Assembly: GCA_002269645.1 (NCBI GenBank)
Contig: NIVC01002093.1
Coordinates: 62,001 to 126,000, forward strand
Reading direction: 5' to 3'
DNA from: Macrostomum lignano
Lineage: Eukaryota
Length of the DNA: 64,000 nucleotides
Shown here: one piece after another, positions 26,451-61,429 of the stretch
Position numbering within the stretch: the stretch's first letter is position 1
Layout: each line of letters opens with the position of its first letter
Position numbers and translations under genes: made by a program
Notes under the pieces: generated by a model
What the model was told of the DNA's origin: nothing
The model's input: the letters and a program-made list of their open reading frames with translations, nothing else
Database searches by the model: none

Positions 26451-27626
26451 TTAGCGCAACTGCTTTTGATCGGTAATCGAGGTCAAATCACCAGTCAGTA
26501 AGGTCACATCACCAGTCACCAAGGTCACATCACCAGTCACCAAGGTCACATCACCAGTCACCAAGGTCACATCACCAGTCAACATGGTCACATCAACAGT
26601 CAACTGGGTCACATCACCAGTCAATCGGGTCACATCACCATTCAACTTGGTCACATCACCAGTCAACATGGTCACATCACAAGTCAACGTGGTCACAACA
26701 CCAGTCAGTCAGGTCACATTGCCAGTCAGTCGGGTCACATCACCAGTCAATTGGGTCACATCACCAGTCAACTGGGTCACATCACCAGTCAACGCGGTCA
26801 CATCACCAGTCAACGCGGTCACATCACCAGTCAACGCGGTCACATCACCAGTCAACGCGGTCACATCACCAGTCAACGCGGTCACATCACCAGTCAATCG
26901 GGTCACATCACCATTCAACTGGGTCACATCACCAGTCAACATGGTCACATCACCAGTAAACGCGGTCACATCACCAGTCAGTCGGGTCACATCACCAGTC
27001 AGTCGGGTCACATCACCAGTCAACTGGGTCACATCACCAGTCAATCGGGTCACATCACCATTCAACTGGGTCACATCACCAGTCAACATGGTCACATCAC
27101 AAGTCAACGTGCTCACAACACCAGTCAGTCGGGTCACATCACTAGTCAGTCGGGTCACATCACCAGTCAGTCGGGTCACATCACCAGTCAGTCGGGTCAC
27201 ATCACCAATCAACATGGTCACATCACCAGTCAGTCGGGTCACATCACCAGTCAACATGGTCACATCACCAGTCAACGCGGTCACATCACCAGTCAATCGG
27301 GTCACATCACCATTCAACTGGGTCACATCACCAGTCAACATGGTCACATCACAAGTCAACGTGCTCACAACACCAGTCAGTCGGGTCACATCACCAGTCA
27401 GTCGGGTCACATCACCAGTCAGTCGGGTCACATCACCAGTCAGTCGGGTCACATCACCAGTCAGTCGGGTCACATCACCAATCAAAATGGTCACATCACC
27501 AGTCACCAAGGTCACATCACCAGTCCCTAAGGTCAAAACACCAGTAGAGGTCATAACACCAGTAGAGGTCACATCACCAGTCACTAAGGTGATGTGACCA
27601 TCCAATCCAATTAAACGTAGAAACAA
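26451..27626 (-). CDS. 21-bp-repeat gene encoding ~50 heptads (VTxLTGD), probable long coiled coil; one in-frame TGA at 26711-26709
   Basis: ORFs 27626 and 26696 are in the same frame, separated by a CGA>TGA-type stop. Val/Leu at heptad a/d positions; Leu is encoded by both TTG and CTG across units. Confidence 0.5.
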
Positions 27627-27978
27627 TCAAACGAAGCGGAGACTGGGTGAAATGCGTGAAATGATCAAAACTCGCAAGCAAGAGAATAGCTAACTTAACT
27701 AACTATAGATTGAAGAATTGGCTGGCTGGCTGACTGACTTGCATTCTGCCTTCGATTGATGCTTGCGCGCGCGCGTTTTTATCAGTTAGCGGGCTACCCT
27801 CCACGCTTTCTATTTCGATACCAACGAGTTAAATATAAATGGGGGATGACCCTAGACAGTATACAAATGACCTTGTCATCGGCCAATACAGAGCAGCGAA
27901 AACCAACCCCCATAAATACAAGCCAATAGATGCGTAAAATTGATGCTAAAATTGGCGAGCATGGTATATCCTAGGGTC
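27616..27978. repeat. ~360-bp block with twin CCAAT boxes; inverted diverged copy at 56906-57259
   Basis: Alignable by eye to the reverse complement of 56906-57259; CCAAT at 27883 and 27923. Confidence 0.85.
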
Positions 27979-28910
27979 TTAGCTTTTTAGGAACATAAAC
28001 TATATCGCGGGTCGTACTCGTATGTACAAATGCTGAATTACGTTAGAATCAACTTGTATAATCAAAGCGCTTACGTTATGCTCGTTCGCGCTCTGTTGCC
28101 AGCTGGGTCTCTCTCGAAGATGACATTGTTAACCCGTTGCGCCATACTTAGAGGTGGTGATGATTTTAGTTTATTTGAATTGATCGAGTTTAATCGAAAA
28201 ACTAGTAACTATTTAAAACAGAGCTGCTGTAAGAAGTAATTTTATTGTAACAATAACAAATACACGAATTCGCGTGCTCATGGATGCTCAACTGGTTGTC
28301 TCGTCTAGTTTATGGTCTAGTATAGCCTATTCTAGCATTTTAAAATATCACGCGTAGACAGGCCATAGAATTAATATCGTGTGTACGAGTATGTAAATGA
28401 ATGTATGTATACATAGTGTCTGTATTGGTTGGTATATTCGCCGGGTTTCAGTCAGTCACGCTGAAAATACAGACCGGATGATTAAGATCAGCGACATTAT
28501 TAGTCAACATGTTGGATGTTAGCATCGGTACGGCATTTGAACGTTTTTTGGTTTCTAAATATACTTGTTTGTCAGAGGAAAGTGTGGGAGAGGGAGGGGC
28601 GGTTAGTTATTAGCATCTCCATATTGAAGTTGACACCAGTACAGTAGCTTTCATAACTGCGCCTGTTACATAGTTGATTGAATTTGGATGCACCATCTCT
28701 GTTATCGGTTGACAGTGATCTTTACAGTGCGTGTGATCGCTGTATGGTTACTGATTGACTGCAATCGTTAGCACTCAACCATTTATTTAGCTCGACCAAT
28801 AATTAATTAATAGTAAAAAAATATATACAAGATTAGACAACGTGTACAAACGATGAGCCGAAGTGTTTAGTTGAATATTACATTAATTGGTCACAAGTCG
28901 CCACTACCTA

Positions 28911-59928: not shown

Positions 59929-60168
59929 ACTAAACTCAATAATAGTTATTAAACTTATATAACTTATATAACTTCAATAAGTTAAACTTATCTAATATTT
60001 AAGTTCATACATTATGAAATAGTTAGTTAATAATTAAACGTTCAAGCAATCAATCAATCAATCAATCAACCAGATCCACGGCCCGGTCAGGATCAGCAGC
60101 AGACTACCGTAGACGCGTGTGAATGTACTGGATCGAGAGACCATCAATCCAACCAACTATCCAATTAT

Positions 60169-61086
60169 CTAATCGGTGGATCGACGAGAACGCCATCTAC
60201 GGTACAGTCGAGTCCAGGTGCGATTGCGTCGAGGTCGACACCTGTTTACCTGGCAGGCGACTGACCGCCGATCAATGGCAAAGCTGGACTCCTCTAGCAT
60301 ATTGCCATCGGAGTCGTACAGCGACACGGACGGGTCGACTTGACTAATTGGGCTAGCCAACGCTTCGTCCGGTGGTGCACATTAATCGACGACGCTCAGA
60401 TAGACAGTCGCCTCGACCTCTTCGCATACGGCAACAAGTTCCGCGTCTGATATGTACATATCATCAGCGGCGGCCGCATTTGTGTGATCTGTGGTCGCAT
60501 CAGTCGGCGGTTGTTCGACGTTGTCACTGGCGGCATTGCACATAGAAGCATAATAAGCTGTTTCTAGTGCGTCGCACTCTGCCAGCGTATCTGAGTCGAA
60601 CAGGGTGTCGACATCGGCATCAGCATCGACGTCCATATCTTGGTCGATGCACGAATGACGCCGCTTACGCGAGTTTGACGGCATAGATGTCGCAGCAACG
60701 TCGGTCACAATCGCGTTTGCTGCATACAAATCGCCGTCTAACCAGCGCATTGCTTCGTCGAGCTGTTCAGCCCAATCGATGCCTGCCGAATGCATCGCTG
60801 ACACGGCGCGTCTGGTCTCGGCATACGATACAGGCGCCATCATCTGTGTTTGCTGCACTGTATGCTGTTGTTCTTCAACAGATACACAAGCAGCCACCAA
60901 ATCAGCGTCTGTGATGTCGTCTGCCCAGCATAGATGATCGTCAGCAGTGCGCGACTCTTGTAGATGTTGCTGATGCTGCCGCTGCTGTCGATGCTGTTGC
61001 TGCTGCTGCTGTCGATGCTGTTGCTGCTGCTGCTGCTGCTGCTGCTGCTGCTGCTGCTGCTGTTGCGCTTTGTTGGACTCGGACAT
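60169..61086 (-). CDS. Gln-rich/acidic disordered protein with an in-frame TAA at 60384-60382
   Basis: MSESNKAQQQ... The frame continues after the stop as CAPPDEALASPISQVDP...MLEESSFAIDRRSVACQ|gtaaac; ORFs 61155 and 60360 are in the same frame. Confidence 0.45.
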
Positions 61087-61429
61087 GGTTGGTTGATTGA
61101 ATGATTGATTGCTTGATGGATTGATTGTAATCCTGTATATAACTAAACTGTTCAATGGGTTGTCGATTTTTAACAGATAGTTGTCTAATGCGATTATTTA
61201 TCTTGATTGAAACAGACTATTGATATAAATCACCTGCCTTGTCTAGTCGCAACCGGCTCCCTAATACAATTGTCTATGGCAAATTTCGCTTCTTTCTACG
61301 CATAATTGTCTGCGATAGAAATGCACAAATCTCTATCGACTACCTTTATAGTTGATAATTTCTACCCGAATAGCTGTTCTATTTTGCATCGAATGTCGCT
61401 CGATCTCGATATTTATATCCGTATCTATC

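Follow-up and report, generated by a model that had tools for sequence, protein, structure and literature searches.

A possible Crypton-like unit within a 35-kb interval of the Macrostomum lignano genome

Whether an interval of about 35 kb in the genome of Macrostomum lignano is a single giant mobile element, an integrated virus or something smaller and less uniform is the question raised by positions 26451-61155 of a 64,000-nt stretch of this genome, to which we refer throughout, at its full length, as the window. A sequence-only reading had proposed for this interval a giant cargo-carrying element, or else an endogenous virus-like one, in which densely packed small genes surround a gene resembling a tyrosine recombinase (YR). 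Nothing in our analysis shows that the 35 kb constitute a single giant mobile or virus-like element. The explanation that we favour, tentatively and well short of a firm identification, is that the interval is a mosaic with a smaller, divergent Crypton-like unit at its core, and that the YR-like gene, here called gene F, is the recombinase gene of that unit. Gene F would then belong to a low-copy, recombinase-only Crypton-like DNA element of a very divergent lineage which, as far as sequence searches reach, is represented by M. lignano and three environmental fragments only. The features on which this explanation leans are the following, with positions counted along the window.

47663-51711, minus strand: gene F, intact, 1,240 amino acids (aa) in three coding exons, from an in-frame splice model
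51711-50985, 50857-49824 and 49624-47663, minus strand: the three coding exons of gene F in the splice model
50984-50858 (127 nt) and 49823-49625 (199 nt), minus strand: the two introns of gene F, with canonical GT...AG ends
about 48815-49549, minus strand: the recombinase-like domain of gene F, 245 aa, from the family alignment and hhalign
53687-53776, minus strand: an upstream exon of the gene F transcript, probably untranslated, as in UniProt model P0006 (tblastn, 100% over 30 aa)
55006-55223, minus strand: the first exon of the P0006 transcript model (tblastn), inside the dispersed repeat R1 and overlapping an open reading frame of the helical-hairpin family in that repeat

The separate small genes of the sequence-only reading stand only in part. 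Long open reading frames (ORFs) do exceed chance expectation: between 41.0 and 61.2 kb, 13 reach 150 aa or more and 5 reach 250 aa or more, where first-order Markov simulations give 0.8 and 0, respectively; tandem arrays house some of the 13. However, three of the supposed genes belong together: the minus-strand ORFs of 280, 354 and 626 aa splice, as its exons, in a single frame into the 1,240 aa of gene F. Their treatment as separate genes was rejected on the strength of this in-frame splicing and of the junction between exons 2 and 3, which is also present in the UniProt models P0001 and P0006 and thus has independent support. Over 1,009 aa, the splice model and P0006 (A0A1I8G604, 1,084 aa, named 'C2H2-type domain-containing') differ by only 3 mismatches. 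According to the expression-based UniProt models gene F is expressed, and the transcript-based models give it alternative isoforms. The encoded protein comprises, in order, twin zinc fingers, an acidic and helical middle part, the recombinase-like domain and a tail of about 350 aa that is rich in Ser, Pro and Arg, of low complexity and partly encoded by a 48-nt tandem repeat. Six partial UniProt models of gene F (P0001-P0005 and P0007) bear the name 'Ras-GEF domain-containing protein', but Pfam finds no RasGEF domain in the corresponding exons of the window; the name is unsupported and looks like an annotation artefact. As a separate observation, the upstream exon at 53687-53776 (minus strand) is antisense to the coding region of a neighbouring hairpin gene, gene G (53614-54184, plus strand).

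The evidence for a recombinase lies in the domain encoded by exon 3 and in its relatives, and in the window such a domain occurs once, in gene F. Candidate active-site residues, in exon 3 numbering, are R103, K141, D221-x-x-R224, T247 and Y256. In the family alignment, which has four members, an Arg (in the context R-[LV]-x-P-W), a Lys and an Arg-Arg pair are invariant, and so is the Tyr in all three members that reach it; the spacing of these candidates is plausible, but the Arg-I and Lys ones were assigned by eye only. Aligned by hhalign with a reference profile made from annotated records of XerC, XerD, lambda Int and Cre, the domain yields a single local match over its last 90 residues (score 28.9, P 0.0036, probability 9%). 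In the resulting register I-F pairs with L-F of XerC, D-x-x-R with H240-x-x-R243 and T with H266, while the catalytic Y275 is matched by Y256, and the spacing from Arg to Tyr is 32 residues in both proteins. None of 300 column-shuffled profiles reached 28.9 (mean 12.6, maximum 23.5), the reversed profile scored 12.8, and with a set of eight reference sequences the register was kept (P 0.015). We regard this likeness to tyrosine recombinases as specific but weak, and membership of the superfamily as unproven. What remains of the YR-like gene first described is a multi-copy, expressed gene whose weak recombinase likeness is in the correct register.

Copies and relatives of gene F provide the second line of evidence. 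A search with the core region recovered M. lignano proteins in UniRef at 93-98% identity, the 90% clusters of which contain seven gene models, the copies elsewhere in the genome being read as protein models only. These seven models represent six haplotypes that are 98-100% identical and differ at nine positions in about 270 aa, and six haplotypes exceed what two homeologues would give. When 1.84 billion representative proteins were searched exhaustively with HMMER, the matches were, apart from M. lignano proteins, three fragments at 25-33% identity and one spurious coiled-coil protein; beyond M. lignano and these three environmental fragments, the family was found in no other organism in that collection. 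No further members came to light when the family alignment served as a search profile, and a metagenome scan gave no relatives; exact look-ups of ORFs of the window and of P0001 in contig collections, which lack the M. lignano genome, were likewise without a hit. All three fragments are short contigs. Two of them (L005 and L006) are different paralogues from one co-assembly of a brackish microbial mat (IMG 3300040801; PMC8605020), one of them frameshifted, and the third (L007), from Logan run SRR31628394, has an intron. Judged by these sequences, the environmental relatives look like eukaryotic, multi-copy and partly decaying DNA, and the pair from the mat points to an unsequenced meiofaunal animal with the same family.

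If gene F is indeed the recombinase gene of a Crypton-like unit, its N-terminal fingers, of BED/C2H2-like type, would bind DNA, and its C-terminal domain would break and reseal DNA by way of a covalent bond with the tyrosine of an Arg-Lys-Arg-Tyr site in which both usual histidines have been replaced. The unit could then excise and integrate with neither a DDE transposase nor a reverse transcriptase. The copied unit would measure at least 7.6 kb, the extent of the transcript model (55.2-47.7 kb), and might include the divergently placed gene G. Recombinase activity, mobility and unit size are, in this proposal, all predicted from sequence.

A good deal weighs against this proposal, beginning with the domain itself. 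Both usual active-site histidine positions are replaced, one by D or S/T and the other by T. At E values of up to 10, neither the domain nor its relatives match Pfam, PF00589, DUF3435 and DUF3504 included, and neither has a match in PHROGs, NCBIfam or the sequences of the PDB. The hhalign probability is only 9%; the match is not reproduced with a reference set of FimB, FimE, IntA and IntS alone (score 17.5, P 0.13); and a forced full-length alignment leaves the N-terminal half, with the Arg-I and Lys candidates, without confident alignment. Two AlphaFold models are poor (predicted local distance difference test, or pLDDT, scores of 52.7 and 47.6) because the alignment held so few sequences, only 6, and a Foldseek search of the predicted domain against the PDB gave nothing below E = 1.9. 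No element ends or target sites were found for the unit of gene F, and a long low-complexity tail with stable splicing is equally typical of a host nuclear protein. Redundant assembly or hidden tetraploidy could, moreover, explain part of the six haplotypes. M. lignano has been described as a hidden tetraploid; over half of its genome is repetitive and the Mlig_3_7 assembly is redundant, since non-repetitive blocks with identities of 95% or more add up to 180 Mb and its 72,846 genes reduce to 44,328 non-redundant ones (PMC5730564).

Many of these same observations are what one would expect of a host locus, and a cluster of lineage-specific, fast-evolving nuclear genes of Macrostomum is a possible explanation nearly as likely as the Crypton-like one. 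The recombinase-like domain would in that case be domesticated, or not a recombinase at all, and the copies would stem from neopolyploidy, segmental duplication and assembly redundancy. In keeping with such a cluster, gene F is intact and spliced into alternative isoforms, it joins N-terminal zinc fingers to a long Ser/Pro/Arg tail, both of its histidines are replaced and it matches no family model, the hidden tetraploidy of the species comes with redundancy in the assembly, and element ends were not found; the old paralogues within the locus (30-49% identical) also have conserved intron positions, a habit of ordinary gene families. On the other hand, six haplotypes are more than two homeologues would yield, a single metagenome sample holds two paralogues of which one is frameshifted, and no other organism among the 1.84 billion representative proteins has the family. 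The Arg, Lys, Arg and Tyr candidates are all kept, unlike in the DUF3504 genes (PMC3212892), and the transcript of gene F starts within a dispersed repeat.

Comparison with known systems leads to a similar balance. By its architecture, the nearest known kind is the Crypton: in both, a single intron-containing gene with a domain of tyrosine-recombinase type, a candidate one in gene F, is the only enzyme, no reverse transcriptase, DDE or rve domain being present between 27.9 and 63.3 kb, and copy number is low. Terminal repeats, which were not found around gene F, are likewise reported to be absent from animal Cryptons (Kojima and Jurka 2011, PMC3212892). Gene F differs from Cryptons in lacking detectable sequence-profile similarity to curated YR models, in the replacement of the histidine of the R-H-R-Y tetrad, and in being a much larger gene, with BED/C2H2-like zinc fingers and a low-complexity tail of 350 aa. 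The domesticated Crypton recombinases known as DUF3504 genes (ZMYM2-4, QRICH1 and KCTD1) resemble it in being expressed by the host, in combining zinc fingers with a recombinase-type domain and in having an altered canonical site. Nonetheless, gene F has no match to PF12012, it keeps a candidate Tyr and the second Arg, which the DUF3504 genes have lost (PMC3212892), and it is multi-copy in one lineage, whereas the DUF3504 genes are conserved across animals.

The genes that surround gene F bear on how far a unit might extend, and they are as follows.

41044-41514, minus strand: gene B, an acidic, Ser-rich ORF of 156 aa without relatives found (ORF scan)
42027-43266, plus strand: gene C, a zinc-finger paralogue of gene F exon 1 that lacks the recombinase-like part (ORF comparison)
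43947-44511, plus strand: gene D, 155 aa, two tandem helical-hairpin domains, intron at 44216-44312 (97 nt, GTGAGT...TAG)
45104-45604, minus strand: gene E, an ORF of 166 aa without relatives found (ORF scan)
53614-54184, plus strand: gene G, 154 aa, two hairpin domains, a paralogue of gene D, intron at 53877-53982 (106 nt)
58519-59073, minus strand: an acidic gene of 184 aa with C-terminal LEESSF and QTDNIRP motifs (ORF comparison)
60172-61085, minus strand: a paralogue of the 184-aa gene with a poly-Gln N-terminus and one in-frame stop (ORF comparison)

With repeats masked, the six-frame ORFs were compared all against all, and the internal paralogy that the sequence-only reading had noticed was upheld. 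The short introns it had noted are also real: they are spliceosomal and measure 97, 106, 127 and 199 nt. The N-terminal zinc-finger part of gene C is 33% identical to gene F exon 1 over 115 aa, its first finger scoring just above the Pfam cut-off for zf-BED (20.9 against 20.6 bits). Between genes D and G identity is 30%, and the single intron of each has the same position; the tail with the LEESSF and QTDNIRP motifs that is common to the two genes at 58.5-61.1 kb is 49% identical over 55 aa. Gene C occupies two reading frames, the second with QTDNIRP. As these are not linked by a canonical intron, the region represents a pair of genes or else a single gene with one frameshift. Because they are only 30-49% identical, the paralogues within the locus are, by sequence, old. 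The equal divergence of the pairs C/F (33%) and D/G (30%) suggests one old duplication of a two-gene module made up of a zinc-finger gene and a hairpin gene. In the Crypton-like explanation, genes C and D would be the ancient, diverged second copy of that pair, without the recombinase part, and the remainder of the interval would consist of unrelated repeats, minisatellites and an orphan ORF of 675 aa. The description of a recombinase-like gene surrounded by private paralogous genes fits the locus, and it is the extent and unity of the supposed element that have to be questioned. The features that bear on its boundaries are these.

26376-27978, plus strand: left arm, a minisatellite of 21-nt units (about 50 of them) followed by 360 bp of unique sequence (27619-27978)
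56906-58439, minus strand: right arm, inverted relative to the left, with the 360-bp part at 56906-57259, an extra 0.9 kb and a 21-nt array of about 13 units (58164-58439)
55076-56871, plus strand: dispersed repeat R1, with copies at 8065-9781 and 11686-13245 that are 92-99.8% identical
52329-53558, plus strand: a repeat of 13-, 54- and 121-nt arrays, found again in inverted orientation at 6939-7976
51924-52126, plus strand: a 200-bp repeat just upstream of gene F, with a second copy at 59693-59900 (79% identical)
31360-32945, minus strand: a run of ORFs that may form one spliced gene, without a family match; a 12-nt array encodes its (Ala-Glu)n tract

A single element of some 30-35 kb after the manner of the fungal Starships, moved by the recombinase-like protein and with the small genes as its cargo, is what the sequence-only reading had proposed, and we consider it unlikely. 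The two arms (26376-27978 and 56906-58439), the only long inverted structure, bracket about 29 kb, the recombinase-like gene is multi-copy, and the surrounding genes are private and without known function, all of which would suit such an element. Yet the arms are only 85% identical over the 360-bp segment, 0.9 kb of the right arm is missing on the left, both arms stop at their minisatellites, and a word-7 search found no similarity between them outside these arrays, so that neither a terminal sequence nor a target duplication is common to them. Two of the supposed cargo genes (58.5-61.1 kb) lie beyond the arms, gene F sits in the middle of the interval and not at an end, and the left 13 kb are unlinked to the gene cluster, no sequence of this left third (28-41 kb) being in common with it. 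The paralogues within the locus are ancient in comparison with the gene F copies elsewhere, which are 98-100% identical, and the base composition of the interval is that of its flanks. The ends originally assigned to the element are without structural meaning, as 26451 falls within a minisatellite and 61155 is the end of an ORF started by TTG. No common terminal sequence, target duplication or boundary was found that would make 26.4-61.2 kb one unit, and its treatment as such is not supported.

The sequence that had been seen to recur at 8-17 kb does recur, but what recurs are two dispersed repeats, and none of the interval genes is found outside the interval within the window. The left end of R1 contains, on the minus strand, a weaker ORF of the hairpin family, which is therefore also carried by a dispersed repeat. 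The repeat with the 13-nt arrays and R1 adjoin at both 6939-9781 and 52329-56871, the array repeat being flipped at the second place, with gene G in between, and the two may form a composite repeat.

Starships of the Pezizomycotina (PMC10104507) share with this locus a recombinase gene beside genes of unrelated function. Gene F, however, has no match to the DUF3435 'captain' and lies in mid-interval rather than as the terminal first gene, no terminal or direct repeats or target site were found here, and the host is an animal. A bolder version, in which a tyrosine-recombinase lineage without histidines would move a large multi-gene unit with hairpin, zinc-finger and acidic cargo as an animal counterpart of the Starships, strikes us as more doubtful still.

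The inverted arrays invite one further comparison, which turns on the orphan ORF that lies between them.

33292-35319, plus strand: an intact ORF of 675 aa, named a CACTA transposase in the sequence-only reading, without a family match

A large CACTA-like transposon, with the inverted 21-nt arrays as subterminal repeats, the 675-aa ORF as transposase and the gene cluster captured inside, would account for arrays of one 21-nt unit standing inverted about 30 kb apart and for the intact ORF between them; inverted arrays of a short unit do resemble the subterminal repeats of CACTA/EnSpm elements. We nevertheless judge it very improbable. The ORF has no match to any transposase family even at E = 10, nor to anything in Pfam at E values of up to 10, PHROGs, NCBIfam, the PDB sequences or IMG/VR, and seed, pattern and word-7 blastn searches found neither CACTA termini nor terminal inverted repeats around it. 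Inverted terminal sequence of CACTA type was not found at any scale, nor were a target duplication or a recognisable transposase. Repeats that bear minisatellites are common in this species, in which simple and tandem repeats make up 15% of the genome (PMC5730564). The nested CACTA element was accordingly not confirmed, and the orphan ORF may be an unrecognised transposase. For this reading, as for the giant cargo carrier, the inverted arrays are the only positive evidence.

The least credible of the readings, an endogenous large DNA virus or an element of Polinton type, has dense unknown ORFs beside a recombinase-like gene as its sole support and was rejected. A Pfam scan of all 150 six-frame ORFs of 60 aa or more between 27.9 and 63.3 kb revealed no capsid, polymerase, packaging ATPase, protease, integrase, transposase, reverse transcriptase, DDE or rve domain and gave weak zinc-finger matches only. 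PHROGs returned nothing, three scans of IMG/VR found no relatives of the recombinase-like family or of the 675-aa ORF, and the genes have spliceosomal introns.

Neither the Crypton-like reading nor the host-gene one yet supports a giant cargo carrier, and both would be of consequence. If gene F is a working recombinase, it represents a lineage of eukaryotic tyrosine-recombinase elements that every current model misses, and it would offer a first pointer to recombinase-only elements in the genomes of flatworms, in which unclassified repeats abound. If it is a host gene, it exemplifies a recombinase-derived domain, joined to zinc fingers, in which the tyrosine has survived. The family could also aid in annotating the sizeable portion of repeats that have yet to be explained in M. 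lignano, which serves as a model of regeneration and transgenesis.

Some further observations concern the window at large. An Rfam scan of it gave no match. An intact LINE (long interspersed nuclear element) ORF of 1,272 aa, with endonuclease, reverse transcriptase and RNase H domains (21201-25019, plus strand), adjoins the interval on the left and lies outside it. Minisatellites are abundant, with units of 231, 27, 54, 16 and 30 nt at 63355-64000, 4367-5043, 30555-31107, 38271-38732 and 40153-40780, respectively, and several of them yield long spurious ORFs in all frames. Lastly, the repeat block at 8-17 kb contains an inverted pair of 2.1-kb sequences (9562-11670 and 13964-16072) that are 100% identical; they stem from a foldback duplication of very recent date or from an error of assembly.

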